Assembly: GCA_965644295.1 (NCBI GenBank)
Contig: CBFFRP010000278.1
Span: forward strand, 1 to 23,955
DNA: 23,955 nt
Direction: 5' to 3'
DNA from: Paraphysomonas bandaiensis
Lineage: Eukaryota > Protista > Chrysophyceae
Below the pieces are notes generated by a model. It did not search any database. It was given only the letters and a program-made list of their open reading frames with translations, and was not told the origin of the DNA. Position 1 is the stretch's first letter, and each line of letters starts with the position of its first letter. Shown here one piece after another: positions 4,008 through 15,724 of this stretch. The position numbers and the translations under genes were made by a program.

Positions 4008-5525
4008 TCATGTCAGCATCCAAGCATCTAAGTTGCAAATAATTTCATTCGCTGGGCATGGAGGGTCCTGTGAACGAAGCCACTTCAGAACACCAAAGCG
4101 GAATGATTTTGCAGCGGCAGTGCAAGTGGCTTCATTCCATGGGCATGGAGGGTCCTTTAAACGAAGCCACGTCAGAACATTCAAGTGTCCACCTCTAGCA
4201 GCCATGGCGCAAGTGGTTTCATCCCATGGGCATGGAGGGTCCTGTGAACGAAGCCACTTTAGAATCTCCAAATGTCCACACTCTGCAGCAACAACAATAC
4301 AAGTCCGTCCATCCCATGGACAGGGAGGTTCCTGTGAACGAAGCCATTTCAGAACATCCAAGTATCCACACTCTGCAGCAACACTGCAAGTGGCTTCATT
4401 CCATGGACAGGGAGGGTCCTGTGAACGAAGCCACTTCAGAACATCGAAGTGTCCACCTCTAGCGACCATTACGCAAGTTGATTCATCATCCCATGGGCAT
4501 GGAGGTTCCTGTAAACGAAGCCATTTCAAAACGTCCAAGTGTCCACCTCTAGCAGCCATGACGCAAGTGGCTTCATCCCATGGACAGGGAGGGTCCTGTG
4601 AACGAAGCCACTTCAGAACCTCCAAGTGTCCACACTCTGCAGCAACCACAATACAAGTCCGTCCATCCCATGGACAGGGAGGTTCCTGTGAACGAAGCCA
4701 TTTCAGAACGTCCAAGTGTCCACCTCTAACAGCAACACTGCAAGTCCAATCATTCCATGGGCATTGAGGGTCCTGTGAACGAAGCCACTTTAAAACATCC
4801 AAGTGTCCAACAAAAGCAGCCTGTATGCAAGTCCATTCATCCCATGGGCATGGAGGTTCCTGTGAACGAAGCCAGTGAAGTACATCCACATGTCCACCGC
4901 TAGCAGCAGCACTGCATGTCTTTGTGTACCACAGAAACTTAGGGTCTTCTGAACGAAGCCAGCACAGTACATCCAAATGTCCACCTCTAGCACCAGCCTC
5001 GATGCAAACCTGTGTTTCCCATGGACATGGAGGTTCCTGTGAACGTAGCCAACGCAGTACATCCAAGTGTCCACCTCTAGCAGCAGCACTGCAAGTCTGT
5101 CCATCCCATGGACATAGAGGTTGCTGTGAATGAAGCCACTTTAGAACATCCAAGTGTCCACCTCTAGCAGCATTTTCTGCAGCCTTACAAGTTCGCTTAT
5201 TACCCCATTTGTATATAGGGTGCTGTGTATGTGTATATATACGGCATATGAGGTGTTGCAGCTGTTCGAGTCTGCCATCCAGTGCACATCTATTTATTAT
5301 CAGTATGTGTGGGCAGCCCATAGACAGAGCCCATGAGACCATTGAGTTGGTCATACAGTAGTGAGATGCACGTGACTCAAGTCTCTCTCTGCTCTTGTCT
5401 CTCGTGCTATCAGCCATATCGTGAAGTCTCTTACAAGTCATCATCACAGGAAGGAGAGCTGAGTGTGGGATCATAGAGATGATGACACGAATCACATCAT
5501 CATTAAGATCAGATATATTCAACAT
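4008..5525 (-). CDS. Intronless F-box-like domain + 13 tandem 29-30-aa ankyrin-like repeats (GHLDVLKWLRSQ(E/D)PPCPW type), 505 aa
   Basis: The N-terminus ISDLNDDVIRVIISMI......VMMTCKRLHDM fits the F-box consensus (L..LP.E.L..I...L......L..VCK.W). It is followed by 13 units of consensus ARGGHLDVLKWLRSQ(E/D)PPCPWDxxTCxxA. The ORF is uninterrupted. Confidence 0.88.
   Translation of the reverse strand: MLNISDLNDDVIRVIISMIPHSALLPVMMTCKRLHDMADSTRDKSRERLESRASHYCMTNSMVSWALSMGCPHILIINRCALDGRLEQLQHLICRIYTHTQHPIYKWGNKRTCKAAENAARGGHLDVLKWLHSQQPLCPWDGQTCSAAARGGHLDVLRWLRSQEPPCPWETQVCIEAGARGGHLDVLCWLRSEDPKFLWYTKTCSAAASGGHVDVLHWLRSQEPPCPWDEWTCIQAAFVGHLDVLKWLRSQDPQCPWNDWTCSVAVRGGHLDVLKWLRSQEPPCPWDGRTCIVVAAECGHLEVLKWLRSQDPPCPWDEATCVMAARGGHLDVLKWLRLQEPPCPWDDESTCVMVARGGHFDVLKWLRSQDPPCPWNEATCSVAAECGYLDVLKWLRSQEPPCPWDGRTCIVVAAECGHLEILKWLRSQDPPCPWDETTCAMAARGGHLNVLTWLRLKDPPCPWNEATCTAAAKSFRFGVLKWLRSQDPPCPANEIICNLDAWMLT
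4050..5175 (-). repeat. Coding tandem repeat array of 87-90-bp units with high DNA-level identity
   Basis: The motif cctgtgaacgaagcca(c/t)ttcagaac...aagtgtccac recurs every 87-90 nt. Near-identical blocks at ~4261-4352 and ~4615-4706 are offset by 354 nt, equal to 4 units. Confidence 0.95.
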
Positions 5526-8500: not shown

Positions 8501-8586
8501 GCAGGCTACGAATGGCTTTGAGAAGTCGGTAGTGGTTTATCCGAGATCGACCTGTTAATTCAAGACATTATTAACGATAAAAAACC

Positions 8587-11500
8587 TTAACTATAGAGTA
8601 CACACCCAGGTTCACAATGATGTGGGTTCTGACACGGCCCGGAGCACATGGGGCTTCCCAGCCCTTCTCTATCGCCATACCTTCCACGAGGGCATGGCTC
8701 CTATTCAGTAGTGAATCTACTTCAACAATGGAAAAAGTATACGCATACCTCAACACTAATGGTAGATCCCACAGGGCAGTAGAAGCCCTTACGACAGGGA
8801 CCAGAACACAAGGGCGATGACAGCTCAGTCGTGTCCCCATACCTCCCAGCAGGACATTCTCGCAGCACGCCGTGTACGCAATACGTGCCTGGTGGACAGA
8901 CTCGGATATCGTCCCTACATAAAATGCCTCTATTTAATTGACTTCGCAGTCGATCAACTGGTATACCTCGTAGAGCTATTTCCATGTATGGAATAATATC
9001 CAGGAGGTACAACTAAGGGTTTAGGGGAACCTGGTGGGCAATACAGCGCATTGCGAGTGACTTCAGTTGCTACGATTCCACTCAATCCGTCGCGATAGAC
9101 AGAGATATAATCTCCACACTCGAGTTCATACTGTGAAGTACTCCCTTCTGGACAGTAGTAGCCTGGTGCGCAGAGATCAGTGCATGCCGAATTAGCCAGT
9201 CCAGTGGTATTTCCTGTATACATCCTCACACCCTCATCACGACAATGACATCTTCATTACCGTATCTGCCTGCTGGACAACGCCGAGATGTCCCATTCCT
9301 GGAGGCGGTAGGACAATAGTACCCAGCGGGGCATAGTGCGCTACATTCTGGCGTTGTCAGGGCAACATCGCTTCCATAAACCCCTGCGGCCCATTATCAA
9401 CCAATTTATTTAGTCAAACTGACGACAATACCTGGAGGGCATGGTATCTTTACACCTTTGTTGCAGTAATACCCCCTAACATACATATATACACCATCAC
9501 AAGATGCAATCTGTACAGGCAGGACACGCTCTTACAATTCACATTGCGTCTGGTCCGTTCGTTGGGTGGAAGAAGTACCGCCAATTGAGTAATATCCAGG
9601 TGATACTGGAATAGGTGCGGACGACGCTTTTGGGCAGAATACATCTGCGAAATGTTACATAACGTTTAAACCAGATTGATAAAAACTCACCACTTCCTCC
9701 ACATTCAGTGGGTACGGGTGTGGAGGATCCTTCCTCACAGTAAAACCCCTCCTTGCATTGGGCATCACTGATATCCTGGTTACTGCACAGCTCCTCTGAA
9801 CAAGGAACTGCGCAAGTCGAGTCTTTTAGACCAGTATAAGCACCGAATGCTCCTGGACAGATATCGAGTCACATACACAACATTCAAGCATCATTCGCAT
9901 ACCAGGGGGGCACTTTGTCGGAGTGGTAGACCCTGAGGGACAGTAATGCCCCAGTGGACATACAGCCGTACAATTACTATTGGTAAGGCCATATTCACTG
10001 CCATAAGTACCAGCTGGACAAGGAATTTGATCAGGTTTCGTTGATCCCTCAGGACAGTAGTGTCCAGGGTGACACAAGCCTACAAAGAGTACACATATTG
10101 GAGGAGAAAACCTGAAAGCGTCAATGTCCTACCTGAACAGAAATCTGCATTTAACTCTCCAAAAACAGGTCCGACAGCATTAGACAGGCCACGCACTGCG
10201 CCATACGTTCCTGCTGGACAAAAAAATCGTTCACCTGTGGTCTCAGCACAGTAATATCCTTCGTCGCATATGCGCTGGTCTTCTCGAGTGAAACTGCTGT
10301 TTCCCCCAATCGAATAGTAACCTCTTGACACTGGAATGGGCATACTACTTCCCTCAGGACAGTACAGTGCACTGCTGCCACATTCCATTGAAGTCGCTCT
10401 AGTGCTCCCAGCGGGGCAGTAGTAGCCTTTTTGACAGAGACCCGTGCAAGTAATATTCGACAGCCCTATCTGTGATCCATATCGGCCTGCAATATAATGA
10501 CGACAAGTGAGTTTTGGTGAGAAAATCGACTTTTCAGAGCATAACTACAGTAATATAGTACCTGCCGGGCATATATTTCCTGTAGCATAAATACTTCCTT
10601 CAGGGCAGTAGTATCCTAAAGGACATTTTCCACTACATTCTCTTGTTTTGAGACCTACGAAAACAAATCAAAGAAAGCAAAGTGACAAACACTGAATTTA
10701 TTTTCGAACCTTCGGAATCGCCATATGTGCCACCTGGACACTCTCTTTTAGTTTTGCCGTCTGGACAATAATGCCCCATTGGGCACACAATGGGTACCAC
10801 AGAACCAGTAGGACAGTATGTCCCAACTGGACACATACCAGTACATTCTCTAGTTGACAAATAGGACTGGTTTCCATAAGTTCCCACTGGACATTCATTT
10901 TCAACACCATCTACACAGTAGTGTCCAGGACTACAAGCCACCGATGATACTCGAGACTGAATTGATTCGGGCGATGCCAACCCATATATATCCAACGTTT
11001 TCTCACCAATTCCAGCCAACAAAGGAGCCCCACTACCAGGTGGACAGAATAGTTCTCCATGTCCACCACACAGATGCTGACAACTGACAGTAGATCCGCC
11101 TGTACAGAAACAACCTGCTCGGCACTTACCAGAGCAGAACTGATTGGAATTGCCAGAGACATTCCCAAACCGCCCAGCTGGACAGTCTAGACAATGCACA
11201 TGTGGCGATCCTTCAGAAGAATATTCATCATCTCTGTATCGCCCAACTGGGCAATCAATAGGTTCATCACACAGCCCCATCGCACCACAAAACTGGGACT
11301 TGCATGTCCTGTCAAATGCATGTAATGCACAAGCGAATCGCGGAGGTTTATCACATGACCCACACTTCTGACCGTTCAGACGTCCAAATGGGGCTTCATC
11401 AAAAAAGTAGAAAGTTCTCCCACCCTGGGCGTAGTCCTCGTCCACATAGTCATAAAGGTCAACGTGCTTGATCATCTGAAAGTTTTGTGTCAAGCTATTT

Positions 11501-13570
11501 GACCCATATAGTGTGAAGGTCATGGGGCAGCCTTCCGGAGCATCCGGGTTACCCGCACCGCACACAATTCGGAGGGCAGTCGGAAGAACTCTTCGACCCC
11601 GATCTATACCAGCCTTTTGCAATGGGCTAGGAGTATTTTCCTCAACTCCCATATCCAAAATAACCCACTGGGGCGTTGATATCTTATGTCGCCATGCGCC
11701 AACACTTTTCGTCACCCATGAACTACCACCTGAAGAATCTCCATCAAATGCTTTGAAACAGTGGTGAAGCTGGCTCTCAAAAGTGGAGCACATCACTGCT
11801 AACGGACTCGGATGGCGCGGTGACTGGAGTTTAGAGTAATTACGTGGAACTTCAGTCTGCGCAAGAAAACCCTCGTAAAACTCCAGCTCGTTGATGATAA
11901 GTCTACCACTAGTTGTATTGCCTCCAACCCGAGTAATTTCAAGTTTCAAGTATCTGTGCAATCGCATCGTAAGGAAAAAGCAAAATAATATATACCATAG
12001 CATTGTAAAGTATAAATCATTACAACAGACCTGTATCCCTCTGGCTCGCTTAATTTGCGCCAAAAGCCCTCATGAATAATATTTCCTTTCCACTCAATGG
12101 AGCCTTCAAAACTGGAAGTTCCAAACGGGTCCGTTGGCAGCACCTCACCTAGAGCCAAATCTGCTGACCAAATAGTTTCTGTCTGCCCCCATGTGTCTAA
12201 CAACTCTGCTTGCTTTTCATATTCCACAAACTGTCGGCCTACGCATAAACAAACATACATCACTCTAATAATAGTCGCAGAATACAATATTACCAGATGC
12301 TCTAAAGTCCACACCACTGATTGTATTCCCCCTGAGAATGCCCCACACTGACCCCCACGTGCGAGCATGGGGATGCTGAGTGGCAAAAAACAAGTGTCCC
12401 TGTGTCTCTACCCGAACTAAAGCACCACTGCTGTCTGCCCATAATCCTGTCAGGTTTAAAGCGGGTACTGGAGATGACGGTGAGTCGTGTTGTTCTCGAA
12501 GTGGGCTTAACGTAAGAGGATGCCACCCCTCATATCGCCCTCTTACCCCTTGTCCAGAGGATACATTGAGCTCAGTGAGAGGCACAAAACTTATGTTCAT
12601 CACCCTCGGGTCAGTACCCAGTACTGACTGGACACCGTGCCCATCATTTAACGACTCACGTACATTGTACTCCATGAACGACTGGAAATTTTCGTTAAAG
12701 TGGTAGAAGTTATCTTCCATTTCACGCTGGAGGACTAGTTGATGCAAGCGTAAGTCGCTGTCAAAATAAACCCGTGTAATTAGGGTCTCATATCCAGGTT
12801 GCTTGACCATGATGTTTAGATGCCGAGGAGGGCCGTAGGAAGGGGGCAGTGTTGTGCGTATCTCGAACCCGCCTTCCGAATCAGTGACAACCTCACCGCG
12901 ACACGACAGCGAGCGCATGGTTGCTTCGCTCCATGATGAATCCTGTATTACATCCACCATACCTTGAGCACTATGCTCAATTAATAGTCTGGTATCAATA
13001 TGCCAAAATTCGATCGTTACACCACCCAATGATTTGCAAATGTCCCCAAAGCGTGCACGCAGTACTCCATTGATTCGTAGGTTAGTAAGTTTCATGGGAG
13101 TAAAGAGTGGTGGTATACCGCTATCGATACCATAATAAGGTGGGATAAGGTAATCGTCATCCTCAGACTCTATACACATATGTGCATCACTAGTAGTGAG
13201 AAGAGGTGGTGGAATGAAGTCCACAGTATCAAGTGCTGTAGGTTGACAGGGACCACTAGGACTACACACTGCACTGGGACAACCCCTACTGGCATCGCTT
13301 AAACTCACATTGTCCACACACACGGGAAATATATTACTGCCTGTACATGAAAGTGTCACTGAATCAAAATTAACCCATGCACTGTGCGAGGAGAGCCAAT
13401 GTGTACTATACGATGCAAACGCTTCAGAAAACAGACCGCCTGAGATGGAAGCCTCGCCAACTGTAAACAACACATTACATTAATTGTCTCAACACCATCC
13501 ATTATACTCATAACGTACCGGATACTGCAGCTAGGGAGGTATAAATAAGGAGGAGAATGACGGGTGCCAT
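8587..13570 (-). CDS. Secreted cysteine-rich mosaic protein (~1419 aa): signal peptide + intradiol ring-cleavage dioxygenase-like domain + small beta-barrel + F5/8 type C-like domain + GCC2/GCC3 (ephrin-receptor-like) Cys repeats; 14 exons
   Basis: Exons 13570-13519, 13460-12294, 12238-12031, 11953-10710, 10654-10562, 10486-10133, 10079-9903, 9852-9691, 9644-9536, 9475-9432, 9383-9261, 9213-8967, 8914-8749 and 8700-8587 are joined by GT-AG introns of ~47-77 nt. They total 4260 nt and stay in frame to TAA. The protein starts MAPVILLLIYTSLAAVS. Dioxygenase motifs: PPYY, LRINGVL...CKSLGGVTIEFWHID, RGEVVTDSEGGFEIRTTLPPSY, HLNIMV..PGYETLITRVYF. Discoidin motifs: AFDGD....W, QWVILDMG, FTLYGS. There are many CP(A/P)G.YCP.GS and CPAG.(Y/F)G...GL....CSG.C repeats. 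No C-terminal TM segment. Confidence 0.88.
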
Positions 13571-14231
13571 CAATCAGATAATGAGATCCTATAAGGATAG
13601 AACGCCTATTAGATACCCCTGTAATGAGAAACCATACACAACCACTTGAACTGTTTGAGTGGTATGGGAATGGAGAGGGAGTTGAATGTGTCTCTTCATG
13701 AACATAATCACAAGAAACGATCCATATGAATACCTACATACACATACATACATATATATACATATATATATACATATATCTATACAGTCTACCTGCTGTA
13801 CACGTACATTATATACAGGCATATGGCAACTGAGCATATACAGTGGTGTATACACATGGAATACATCGTTCACAACTATTTCAGTTAAATACTCGAAACG
13901 GACTTTTTTTTCGTGTGTGATGAAGTTTTCGAATGCTATTTTCATGACATAGAAAACTAGGGTTTTACACTACTGGACTTACAATATCTTCATATTTTAT
14001 TGCAGAAATTCGTACCAAGTTTTTTTATACAGTTGTACTCCTGTATACATATACATGGTGTGGTGTACAGTGAATGCATTGAAAGTGTAGTATGTATATA
14101 TGCATACATACATATCTCTATACTCTCATCATCTTTTGCATGTACTACTCTATCAACTACTGCTCATACCATCTCGATAGCTCATGACCACTATTTTTCA
14201 CAGGTGTTAACGTTGTCTTGAGCAAGATCGA
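13571..14231. promoter_or_regulatory. Divergent (head-to-head) intergenic region shared by the mosaic gene and the MAPK
   Basis: The start codons at 13570 (-) and 14232 (+) point away from each other, 661 nt apart. A central T/A-tract region contains AAAACTAGGGTTTT (13953-13966). There is a probable 5'UTR intron acceptor on each side (ttttcacag at ~14203 on +; tatgtag at ~13734 on -). Confidence 0.5.
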
Positions 14232-15724
14232 ATGTCCACTAGAACCTATCACAGATTTAAAGCCTCTGGGCAACAGTTTGAGGTAAAACAATAAGGAGAC
14301 AATTATACTTCTGTATGCGATATTACTTCAACTCACTTCATTATTTATACAGGTGGAGTCAAAGTACTCCTTTATCCGGCCGATCGGACACGGAGCCTAT
14401 GGAGTTGTAATGTATTTTTTTCTCCCCCATTTAACCCTCTACTCTCACACACACTGTATATAGATCTGCACTTGACAAATCTTCTAGTCAAAAAGTTGCC
14501 ATAAAAAAGATTACACGTGCATTTGATGATCCTGTAGATGCAAAGCGAATTTTACGAGAAATAAAATTAATGAAAAAATTTAATCATGAAAATGTATGTA
14601 ATTTTGATAATTTTTGTCAATTTTATTTAACAATATATGTACTTATATACTATAGGTGATCCGTATCGTTGACATTATCGCCCCAGCGCCTACTATAGAG
14701 GAGTTCGAAGATGTTTACATTGTACAGGTGTCTTATATACGATTATCTTATCTGTTTGTTTTAATTTTAATTGTTATTTCTTTAGGATTTAATGGAGACT
14801 GATCTGCATCGTATTATATACTCCAGACAGCCTCTCACTATAGATCATGTGCAATACTTTGTCTATCAGATATTGCGAGGGCTCAAGTATATTCACTCGG
14901 CGAATGTGATCCACAGAGACTTGAAGCCGTCGAATCTGCTTGTGAATGCCAACTGTGATCTCAAGATATGCGACTTTGGCCTGGCTCGAGGAGTAGAGGA
15001 CGAGCAGTCGGGCGCTCTCACGGAGTATGTTGTGACTAGATGGTACCGCGCCCCGGAGATAATGCTTGCCTGCCATGAGTATACTAGAGCGATTGATGTG
15101 TGGTCTGTGGGGTGCATATTTGCGGAGCTTTTGGCGAGACAGGCACTCTTCCCCGGTGATGACTACATTGCCCAGCTACGACTAATTTGTGAAAAGATGG
15201 GCCGCCCCGCGGAAAGTGACCTCGATTTCGTGACTTCCGACCGTGCAAAGCAATTTATCGCATCCCTCCCTGTGAAGAAACCGTACCCTATGACAGAGAT
15301 GTTTCCTGATCACAAGGGAGAGAAGGAGGCTCATAATCTGCTGCGCAAGATGCTTGAATTCCATCCGCACCGACGTATATCTATCGAGGACGCTCTTGCC
15401 CACCCATTCATGTCGTCTCTACACAATCCTGATGATGAGCCTATTGCGGACTTCACATTTGACTTTGCTTTCGAGGACGATGACCTCTCTCGGGAGCGCG
15501 TGCAAGCCCTCATATGGGATGAGATTCGCGAATTGCATCCTGACATTCCGGAAAGTTGTCCGTGTGCCACACCCAGGAGGAGGCCCAGTAAAGCGGGAAG
15601 TGGGGTGTTTGCTGATGCGAAGGCGGATTCCAAGACGGAAGTGGATGACGACAGCAAAAATGCAGCCGATGACAGCCCCAAGAGATCGGGGCGTAAGAGA
15701 TCTGCTGCCCCGTCGGAGAAGTAG
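14232..15724 (+). CDS. Mitogen-activated protein kinase, TEY activation loop (ERK/plant-MPK-like CMGC kinase), 5 exons, ~416 aa
   Basis: Exons 14232-14282, 14353-14411, 14464-14593, 14656-14727 and 14786-15724 total 1251 nt. Motifs present: IGHGAYGVV, VAIKKI, AKRILREIKL, HENVI, DLMETDLH, IHRDLKPSNLL, ICDFGLAR, LTEYVVTRWYRAPE, DVWSVGCI, and the CD domain LHNPDDEP. Confidence 0.97.

Follow-up and report, generated by a model that had tools for sequence, protein, structure and literature searches.

A putative pseudoenzyme branch of extracellular intradiol dioxygenases within a multidomain rod protein of Paraphysomonas bandaiensis and other ochrophytes

Introduction

Intradiol dioxygenases are regarded as enzymes by definition, and genome and secretome surveys count matches to IPR000627/PF00775 as capacity for aromatic degradation. 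For instance, an 'intradiol ring-cleavage dioxygenase' is listed among the enriched secreted proteins of a heterotrophic diatom (PMC9054022). According to a 2025 study of the extracellular intradiol dioxygenases, their core of two His and two Tyr is absolutely conserved (PMC12420386). In this study, we describe a gene of the chrysophyte Paraphysomonas bandaiensis, which lies in contig CBFFRP010000278.1 (positions 1 to 23,955; this whole stretch of 23,955 nt is called the window here). The gene encodes a large protein that carries a domain with the intradiol dioxygenase fold, a lectin-like domain of the CBM32/discoidin type, and a long Cys-rich rod.

Two other described systems are close to parts of this protein. 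Spider mites have secreted intradiol dioxygenases that were acquired from fungi (PMC9167512). Meanwhile, the Cys-rich domain of the Chlamydomonas mastigoneme protein MST1 is a 26-nm rod with 26 disulfides, which forms antiparallel dimers, makes up the filament core and polymerises (PMC11015965).

Results

The domain in exon 2 has the fold of an intradiol dioxygenase

Searches and fold predictions were run with the exons individually, and natural full-length homologues were used as a proxy for the whole spliced protein. A first-pass annotation of the window had placed an intradiol dioxygenase-like segment at 12755-13165, which corresponds on the minus strand to residues 98-235 of the exon-2 translation. 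We found that such a segment is present there and that the full fold extends beyond it on both sides (Table 1). The Pfam model PF00775 (Dioxygenase_C) matched with a significant E value (2.2e-5), but its 24.5 bits were just under the gathering score of 27.3 bits; full-length relatives gave 16-25 bits. In a phmmer search against PDB, the secreted Streptomyces enzyme SACTE_2871 (4ilt/4ilv) came first (E 1e-8), followed by catechol, chlorocatechol and hydroxyquinol 1,2-dioxygenases. In addition, a family profile of 17 members reached E 3.6e-10 against PDB.

The structural comparisons were made with an AlphaFold2 model of exon 2 (model 1; mean pLDDT, or predicted local distance difference test, of 65). 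Its top Foldseek matches were exclusively intradiol dioxygenases (E 8e-9, probability 1.0). VIA-align superposed model residues 69-320 on 148 of the 157 residues of 4ilv (Z 12.2, root mean square deviation 3.0 A), and two insertions with low model confidence lie within the fold (exon-2 residues 162-175 and 244-275). Furthermore, 43 intradiol dioxygenase entries outranked every other fold, and generic transthyretin-like domains (carboxypeptidase D, teneurin) reached Z 5-5.5. A generic transthyretin/CnaB-type sandwich, which had been set beforehand as the outcome that would speak against a dioxygenase assignment, is ruled out by this gap (Z 12 versus 5.5). As modelled, the fold is specifically that of an intradiol dioxygenase. 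The feature search of the ESM Atlas with exon 2 gave no usable match. With respect to PF00775/IPR000627, the domain has the beta-sandwich core fold and the second-sphere Arg, and it lacks the Fe(III) ligand set.

The canonical iron site is lost here and across the family

Both sequence motifs that the first-pass annotation had quoted, FWHIDTRLLIEH and PPSYGPPRHLN, are present in the domain (Table 1). In canonical relatives, the first motif reads W[HQ]xDxxGxY. Between the Trp of FWH and the Tyr of PPSY, the window protein lacks Tyr altogether, so the first Tyr ligand is unavailable in this segment under any alignment. In the alignment to 4ilt, PPSY-GPPRHLN stands opposite PGLYpGRTRHIHV, and among the Fe(III) ligands (two Tyr and two His) the second Tyr and the first His remain in the window protein. 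The Arg had been described as displaced. This is not the case, and the Arg of PPRH is aligned with that of GRTRHIH, directly before the first His, exactly as in SACTE_2871.

To place these residues in the family, the 169 domain matches of an exhaustive HMMER search were aligned to the domain hidden Markov model (HMM), and the ligand positions were tabulated. The same search returned 17 canonical relatives, typically of about 200 amino acids (aa), which retain all four ligands (Y, Y, H, H) and usually have the Arg as well (one K, one Q and one S in its place). In contrast, the GxY of the first Tyr is absent from the 63 R-type members and is replaced by an insertion of variable length. Their second Tyr is kept except for F in three and H in one, the Arg is invariant, and the first His is kept except for N in five clusters, S in one and Y in one. 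The second-His position is occupied by N, M, V, A, S, D, I or F, and by His in none (0/63). The canonical 2-Tyr/2-His Fe(III) site is therefore gone, both in the window protein and across the family, as had been claimed for the window protein. Since the four-ligand core of the extracellular enzymes is absolutely conserved (PMC12420386) and is lost here, the family fails a defining feature of the enzyme. Because this site is missing, we infer that the domain is non-catalytic and would not cleave catechol.

The possibility that Asn is a family-wide replacement ligand for the second His was ruled out by the hypervariability of that position. Meanwhile, SYGPPRH is invariant in all 16 homologues found by a word search (16/16) and lies within the best-conserved block of the N-terminal 400 residues. 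This conservation argues for a retained, presumably non-catalytic use of the old active-site surface.

One relative has an unusual arrangement. In P0029 (1574 aa, from an ENA metagenome), the Tyr and His positions are seemingly swapped, with His at the Tyr site and Tyr at the His site. This is reminiscent of the engineered axial-ligand-swap mutants of protocatechuate 3,4-dioxygenase that are among the PDB matches.

Distribution of the family

In the exhaustive profile search, 915 proteins reached E 0.001 and 54 reached E 1e-30, and many of these relatives are 1000-1850 aa long. Two narrower searches with a word index returned little: the head of the full-length homologue P0039 found P0039 alone, and the full-length alignment found four proteins, none of them named. 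The whole architecture recurs in the chrysophytes Mallomonas annulata and Epipyxis sp. (EukProt), and a pelagophyte transcript in MMETSP has the same part order.

In addition, there is a sister group, which we call Q-type. Its Arg is changed to Gln (GPPQH), the second-His position two residues on holds E, N, S or F, and part of the first motif survives (GWY or GRF). Members are known from Tribonema minus, Phaeothamnion confervicola, Chrysophaeum taylorii and Pelagophyceae sp. CCMP2097 (P0064, P0068, P0073, P0076 and P0081). At about 940-1800 aa, the large members of this group, among them those of Tribonema, Phaeothamnion and the pelagophyte CCMP2097, contain the head, the CBM32-like domain and the rod, and a 395-aa Chrysophaeum protein matches in the head only. 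The Q-type may be an intermediate stage in the decay of the iron site. In a FastTree analysis of 131 columns, the R-type sequences grouped together (support 0.87), apart from the Q-type and canonical ones; the canonical sequences in this tree are unlabelled.

The Q-type proteins are named 'Intradiol ring-cleavage dioxygenases domain-containing protein' in UniProt, and the JGI pipeline labels several members 'protocatechuate 3,4-dioxygenase beta subunit'. The architecture had not been recognised by the first-pass annotation from characterised proteins. We found no characterised member either; however, it is not unique, and a conserved ochrophyte family is already in the databases under these automatic names. 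So far, the family has been found only in ochrophyte stramenopiles, a range drawn from few named clusters. Our literature searches (pseudoenzyme intradiol; mastigoneme and dioxygenase; intradiol in diatom or stramenopile) returned no paper describing it. Judged by their sequences, these proteins appear to be a new and conserved branch of pseudoenzymes among the extracellular intradiol dioxygenases, as yet uncharacterised and placed in a multidomain context that is novel.

Two metagenomic loci (L004 and L005; JGI metagenomes 3300061947 and 3300062158) carry an intronless family member of 923 aa at 10001-12772. Its neighbours include Mitofilin, a SWEET transporter and DUF1764, and the contigs are from an intron-poor eukaryote. 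The cluster was found on 22 contigs, and in it the first His is lost as well (Tyr, Arg, Asn, Ala).

One gene encodes the head and the rod

The gene model was built by reading the splice sites from the sequence and then comparing each exon with the full-length homologue P0039. All 14 introns have GT-AG borders, all exons are open in phase, and the junction codons contain no stops. Exons 1-15 match successive segments of P0039, a single open reading frame (ORF) of 1441 aa, in collinear order; no poly(A), looked for as a sign of cDNA, is visible on the P0039 contig. The part order is predicted signal peptide, Cys-containing extension, intradiol-dioxygenase fold, beta domain, CBM32/discoidin-fold domain and Cys-rich rod. 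It is the same at two eukaryotic loci of metagenomic or SRA-derived origin (L002 and L003, by tblastx). From the collinear exons and the repetition of this order in L002, L003, Mallomonas, Epipyxis and the pelagophyte transcript, we concluded that one gene encodes the head and the rod, in agreement with the earlier view. That view had given the protein about 1419 aa; the length is 1428 aa, and the short last exon had been overlooked. The head domains are single-copy in this genome.

Table 1. Coordinates in the window of the rod-protein gene, its exons and domains, and its surroundings
Feature	Position	Strand	Remarks
Whole gene	8506..13570	-	15 exons, 4287 nt coding, 1428 aa plus stop
Exon 1	13570-13519	-	start codon and 17-residue hydrophobic N-terminus, predicted signal peptide; read from sequence
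Exon 2	13460-12294	-	
Exon 3	12238-12031	-	
Exon 4	11953-10710	-	
Exon 5	10654-10562	-	
Exon 6	10486-10133	-	
Exon 7	10079-9903	-	
Exon 8	9852-9691	-	
Exon 9	9644-9536	-	
Exon 10	9475-9432	-	
Exon 11	9383-9261	-	
Exon 12	9213-8967	-	
Exon 13	8914-8749	-	
Exon 14	8700-8606	-	
Exon 15	8551-8506	-	short hydrophilic tail and stop codon (8508-8506); splice and reading frame
N-terminal extension	13255..13460	-	conserved Cys 38, 47, 60 and 65 (exon-2 translation); alignments A1 and A2
Intradiol-dioxygenase-fold domain	12499..13254	-	exon-2 residues 69-320; VIA-align, Foldseek and HMM matches
First motif, FWHIDTRLLIEH	12973..13008	-	W[HQ]xD kept; G-x-Y supplying first Tyr ligand absent
Second motif, PPSYGPPRHLN	12814..12846	-	second Tyr, Arg and first His retained; Asn in place of second His
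Beta-rich middle domain	12031..12469	-	end of exon 2 (from about residue 330) and exon 3, across intron 12293-12239
Discoidin/CBM32-fold (galactose-binding-like) domain	11383..11953	-	exon-4 residues 1-190
Strands YLKLEITRV and LIINELEFY	11872-11953	-	first 27 residues of exon 4
CBM32-like body	11383-11871	-	
Cys-rich rod	8606..11364	-	exon 4 from residue 197 through exon 14
F-box/ankyrin gene	4011-5525	-	intronless, 505 aa
Low-complexity TA/TG-rich stretch	13740-13810		about 200 nt upstream of start codon
Protein kinase frame	14792-15721	+	C-terminal two thirds of kinase domain

The N-terminus, the middle domain and the C-terminus

Hydrophobic leaders like that of exon 1 are also found at the start of homologues. 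The N-terminal extension contains the conserved motifs W..H..W, PVC.D and TP.DT.D..PP in both alignments, and after it Cys 71 and 95 (exon-2 translation) lie just inside the dioxygenase-fold part. The C-terminal tail is similar to that of P0039, and no hydrophobic anchor was found in the C-terminal exon. The leaders here and in the homologues, the C-terminus without an anchor and the conserved Cys pairs suggest that the protein is secreted and extracellular. The middle domain has five beta-strands in model 1 (residues 338-386), and its region is uninterrupted by an intron in the homologues P0008 and P0010. It had no Pfam or PDB sequence match, and exon 3 searched for itself had no Pfam match.

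The CBM32/discoidin-like domain

A discoidin domain had been proposed in the first-pass annotation. Its fold stood up and its Pfam assignment did not. In the wide VIA-align search with a model of exon 4 (model 2; mean pLDDT 83.5), residues 28-186 matched CBM32, F5/8 type C, muskelin, DDR1/2, factor V C2 and neuropilin b1 domains with Z 7-8.7 over about 110 residues, and the CBM32 matches include entries with galactose or N-acetylgalactosamine. The C-terminal sandwich of BT0290 matched residues 1-157 (Z 10.7, VIA-align), and the protein-language-model neighbours were F5_F8_type_C clusters (score 0.91). However, PF00754 (F5_F8_type_C) gave 13.9 bits against a cut-off of 28.2 (E 0.06), full-length relatives had no match to it at E 0.01 or better, and phmmer with the discoidin-like part found no match in PDB. 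Thus, with respect to the F5/8 type C/CBM32 group, the domain has the galactose-binding-like beta-sandwich and misses the PF00754 gathering score. It may bind sugar.

Like known CBM32/discoidin domains, it has the AFDGD..W framework motif, and the fold matches cover nearly the whole of their targets. The difference is that the usual two closing strands seemingly precede the domain in the window protein. The strands YLKLEITRV and LIINELEFY stand ahead of the CBM32-like body; most CBM32 matches are limited to residues 28-186, and the BT0290 alignment starts at residue 1. The strand order in the model, which is of a fragment without the preceding domain, is compatible with a circular permutation.

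The Cys-rich rod

The rod contains 74 cysteines in about 740 residues and is made of repeated CxxGxYC-type units. The structural model covers the exon-4 share of it (pLDDT about 90 in this part), and the remainder was assigned by internal repeat similarity. Residues 233-413 of model 2 matched residues 1665-1848 of MST1 (Z 11.1, 158 residues). The rod segment also matched Elapor1 (Z 9.4) and the Cys-rich domains of CaSR, Eph receptor and thyroglobulin (Z 5-6.5). The long disulfide-rich rod of the first-pass annotation is therefore of the growth-factor-receptor/ephrin-receptor type by its elongated disulfide-ladder structure, but the expected Pfam families Ephrin_rec_like and GCC2_GCC3 had no match at E 0.01 or better in six full-length relatives. 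In these relatives and the window exons, Pfam recognised Dioxygenase_C and nothing else. By analogy with MST1, the rod may self-associate.

Neighbouring genes

The neighbouring genes encode a protein kinase and an F-box/ankyrin protein and have no evident link to the rod-protein gene. The former is represented by an open frame (Pkinase E 8e-49), which is probably one exon of the upstream neighbour gene. The latter has an F-box match below threshold (E 0.001), followed by many ankyrin repeats with a recurring CPW motif. Bacterial contamination is ruled out by the 14 spliceosomal-type introns and the eukaryotic neighbour genes.

Discussion

We propose that the dead domain serves binding or recognition without catalysis, by means of the Tyr-Arg-His remnant, and that the rod acts in an extracellular structure, either as a spacer or by associating with itself. 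We consider this proposal rather probable. The protein would be a secreted, disulfide-rich, rod-shaped extracellular glycoprotein, and its second module would descend from the signal-peptide-bearing lineage of extracellular intradiol dioxygenases for which SACTE_2871 is the reference. The remnant of the old substrate pocket, namely the invariant Gly-Pro-Pro-Arg loop with the usually conserved Tyr and His, would probably hold a ligand or a partner protein beside the CBM32-like lectin domain. The head, composed of the dead dioxygenase and the CBM32-like domain, would stand at the end of a ~740-residue rod of the MST1/growth-factor-receptor type, and this rod would either hold the head at a distance from an extracellular structure (for example a cell coat, hairs or a matrix) or build it into one. 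A binding module had also been suggested by the first-pass annotation, and the protein might then act as a surface sensor, adhesin or capture protein, as suggested there.

Other explanations should be weighed against this proposal. The domain might serve structure alone, as a sandwich that acts as a spacer or plug and binds no ligand itself. Such a role would fit a fold family that is often non-catalytic (teneurin and carboxypeptidase D at Z 5-5.5, the iron-free 1eo2_A at Z 8.7) and the family-wide variation at three of the four ligand positions. However, nowhere is the head more conserved than in the old active-site loop, in which the Arg is invariant and the Tyr and His nearly so, and such conservation exceeds the needs of core packing, so we regard a purely structural role as doubtful. 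The protein might instead still be a metalloprotein, either an enzyme or a device for metal or catechol capture, which uses Tyr, His and Asn together with residues of the N-terminal extension or the insertions. As this explanation would expect, the window's subclade and deeper branches of the tree all keep Tyr, Arg, His and Asn, and the N-terminal extension has conserved His, Asp and Cys. Against it, other members have M, V, A, S, D, I or F in place of the Asn, full-length orthologues have N, S or Y for His and F for Tyr, no Tyr can serve at the first ligand position of the window protein, and the known active members retain four ligands (PMC12420386). We think that a surviving metalloprotein is unlikely. 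Finally, the dioxygenase-like part and the Cys-repeat part could be separate adjacent genes that were joined by an artefact of the gene model. The model for this genome was built from DNA alone, and prokaryote-style gene callers break the homologous loci at introns. However, 14 of 14 junctions are in phase with GT-AG borders, and single ORFs of 1100-1850 aa, transcript-derived ones included, cover both parts in many relatives. A split gene is thus extremely improbable.

Several points count against a binding module at the end of a rod. A metal site may have been rebuilt from other residues in three dimensions. In the subclade to which the window protein belongs, all four of Tyr, Arg, His and Asn are conserved, and this could be the mark of a remaining metal or ligand site and not of mere decay. 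In addition, no result points to any ligand, and model 1 is of middling quality. For the rod, Ephrin_rec_like and GCC2_GCC3 had no match even at E 10 or better in four rod exon pieces, and the MST1 match may reflect just a widespread Cys-rich repeat. The extracellular location in this organism is a prediction from sequence.

A bolder idea is that ochrophytes build an extracellular filament or coat, such as flagellar hairs, a scale or a cell-surface layer, partly from this family, whose role as a component would so far have gone unrecognised. In this case, the MST1-like rods would polymerise, and the Tyr-Arg-His pocket of the dead dioxygenase would hold a phenolic or acidic group of a partner or a residual Fe(III). 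We hold this idea to be quite unlikely as a whole. If it is true, a pseudoenzyme was recruited into extracellular architecture across a major algal lineage.

The family matters for annotation. Because a whole conserved ochrophyte branch is without the iron site and forms part of large extracellular rod proteins, annotations overstate the catabolic potential, and the database names of its members appear wrong in implying an active dioxygenase. In addition, the family would provide a clean natural case of an extracellular pseudoenzyme, whose active sister enzymes allow comparison. It is also a candidate component of the surface structures of stramenopiles, the protein composition of which is poorly known.

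Comparison with known systems

Like the window protein, for which secretion is predicted, MST1 (9B4H, 8WA2, 8TX1) is a secreted giant, in which a Cys-rich rod of the growth-factor-receptor type, ~700 residues long, comes after globular N-terminal domains. However, its head consists of nine Ig-like domains, its C-terminus is a glycosylated polyproline helix, and it has no dioxygenase or CBM32 domain. The identity is 19%, and filaments are known for MST1, whereas the window protein is known from sequence and model only.

The secreted intradiol dioxygenases of spider mites (5VG2, 6BDJ; profile E 2e-7, Z 9.5) are similar in being eukaryotic, secreted and of the short-loop subtype (PGHYpGRTPHIHY). 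They differ in being monomeric, iron-containing and active proteins of about 230 aa with all four ligands.

The alpha subunit of protocatechuate 3,4-dioxygenase (PcaG, 1EO2 chain A) has the same fold (Z 8.7) and is free of iron. In protocatechuate 3,4-dioxygenase, the iron is bound by residues of the beta subunit only. Since the PcaG alpha chain binds no iron, it is a precedent for a non-catalytic copy of the fold. Unlike the window protein, PcaG is cytoplasmic, is an obligate partner of the catalytic beta subunit and lacks additional domains.

SACTE_2871 of Streptomyces sp. SirexAA-E (4ILT/4ILV) is the best match in both sequence and structure (26% identity over 148 residues), and its clade comprises the extracellular intradiol dioxygenases of bacteria and fungi. 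It shares with the window protein the short loop from Tyr to His, the Arg directly before His and the secretion, which for the window protein is predicted. In both, the dioxygenase domain is fused to a carbohydrate-binding module, which in the window protein is the CBM32-like fold. However, SACTE_2871 keeps two Tyr and two His and cleaves catechol, protocatechuate, caffeate and hydroxyquinol, whereas the window protein, a eukaryotic protein of 1428 aa, is left with a single Tyr and a single His and has two insertions as well as a Cys-rich extension at its N-terminus.

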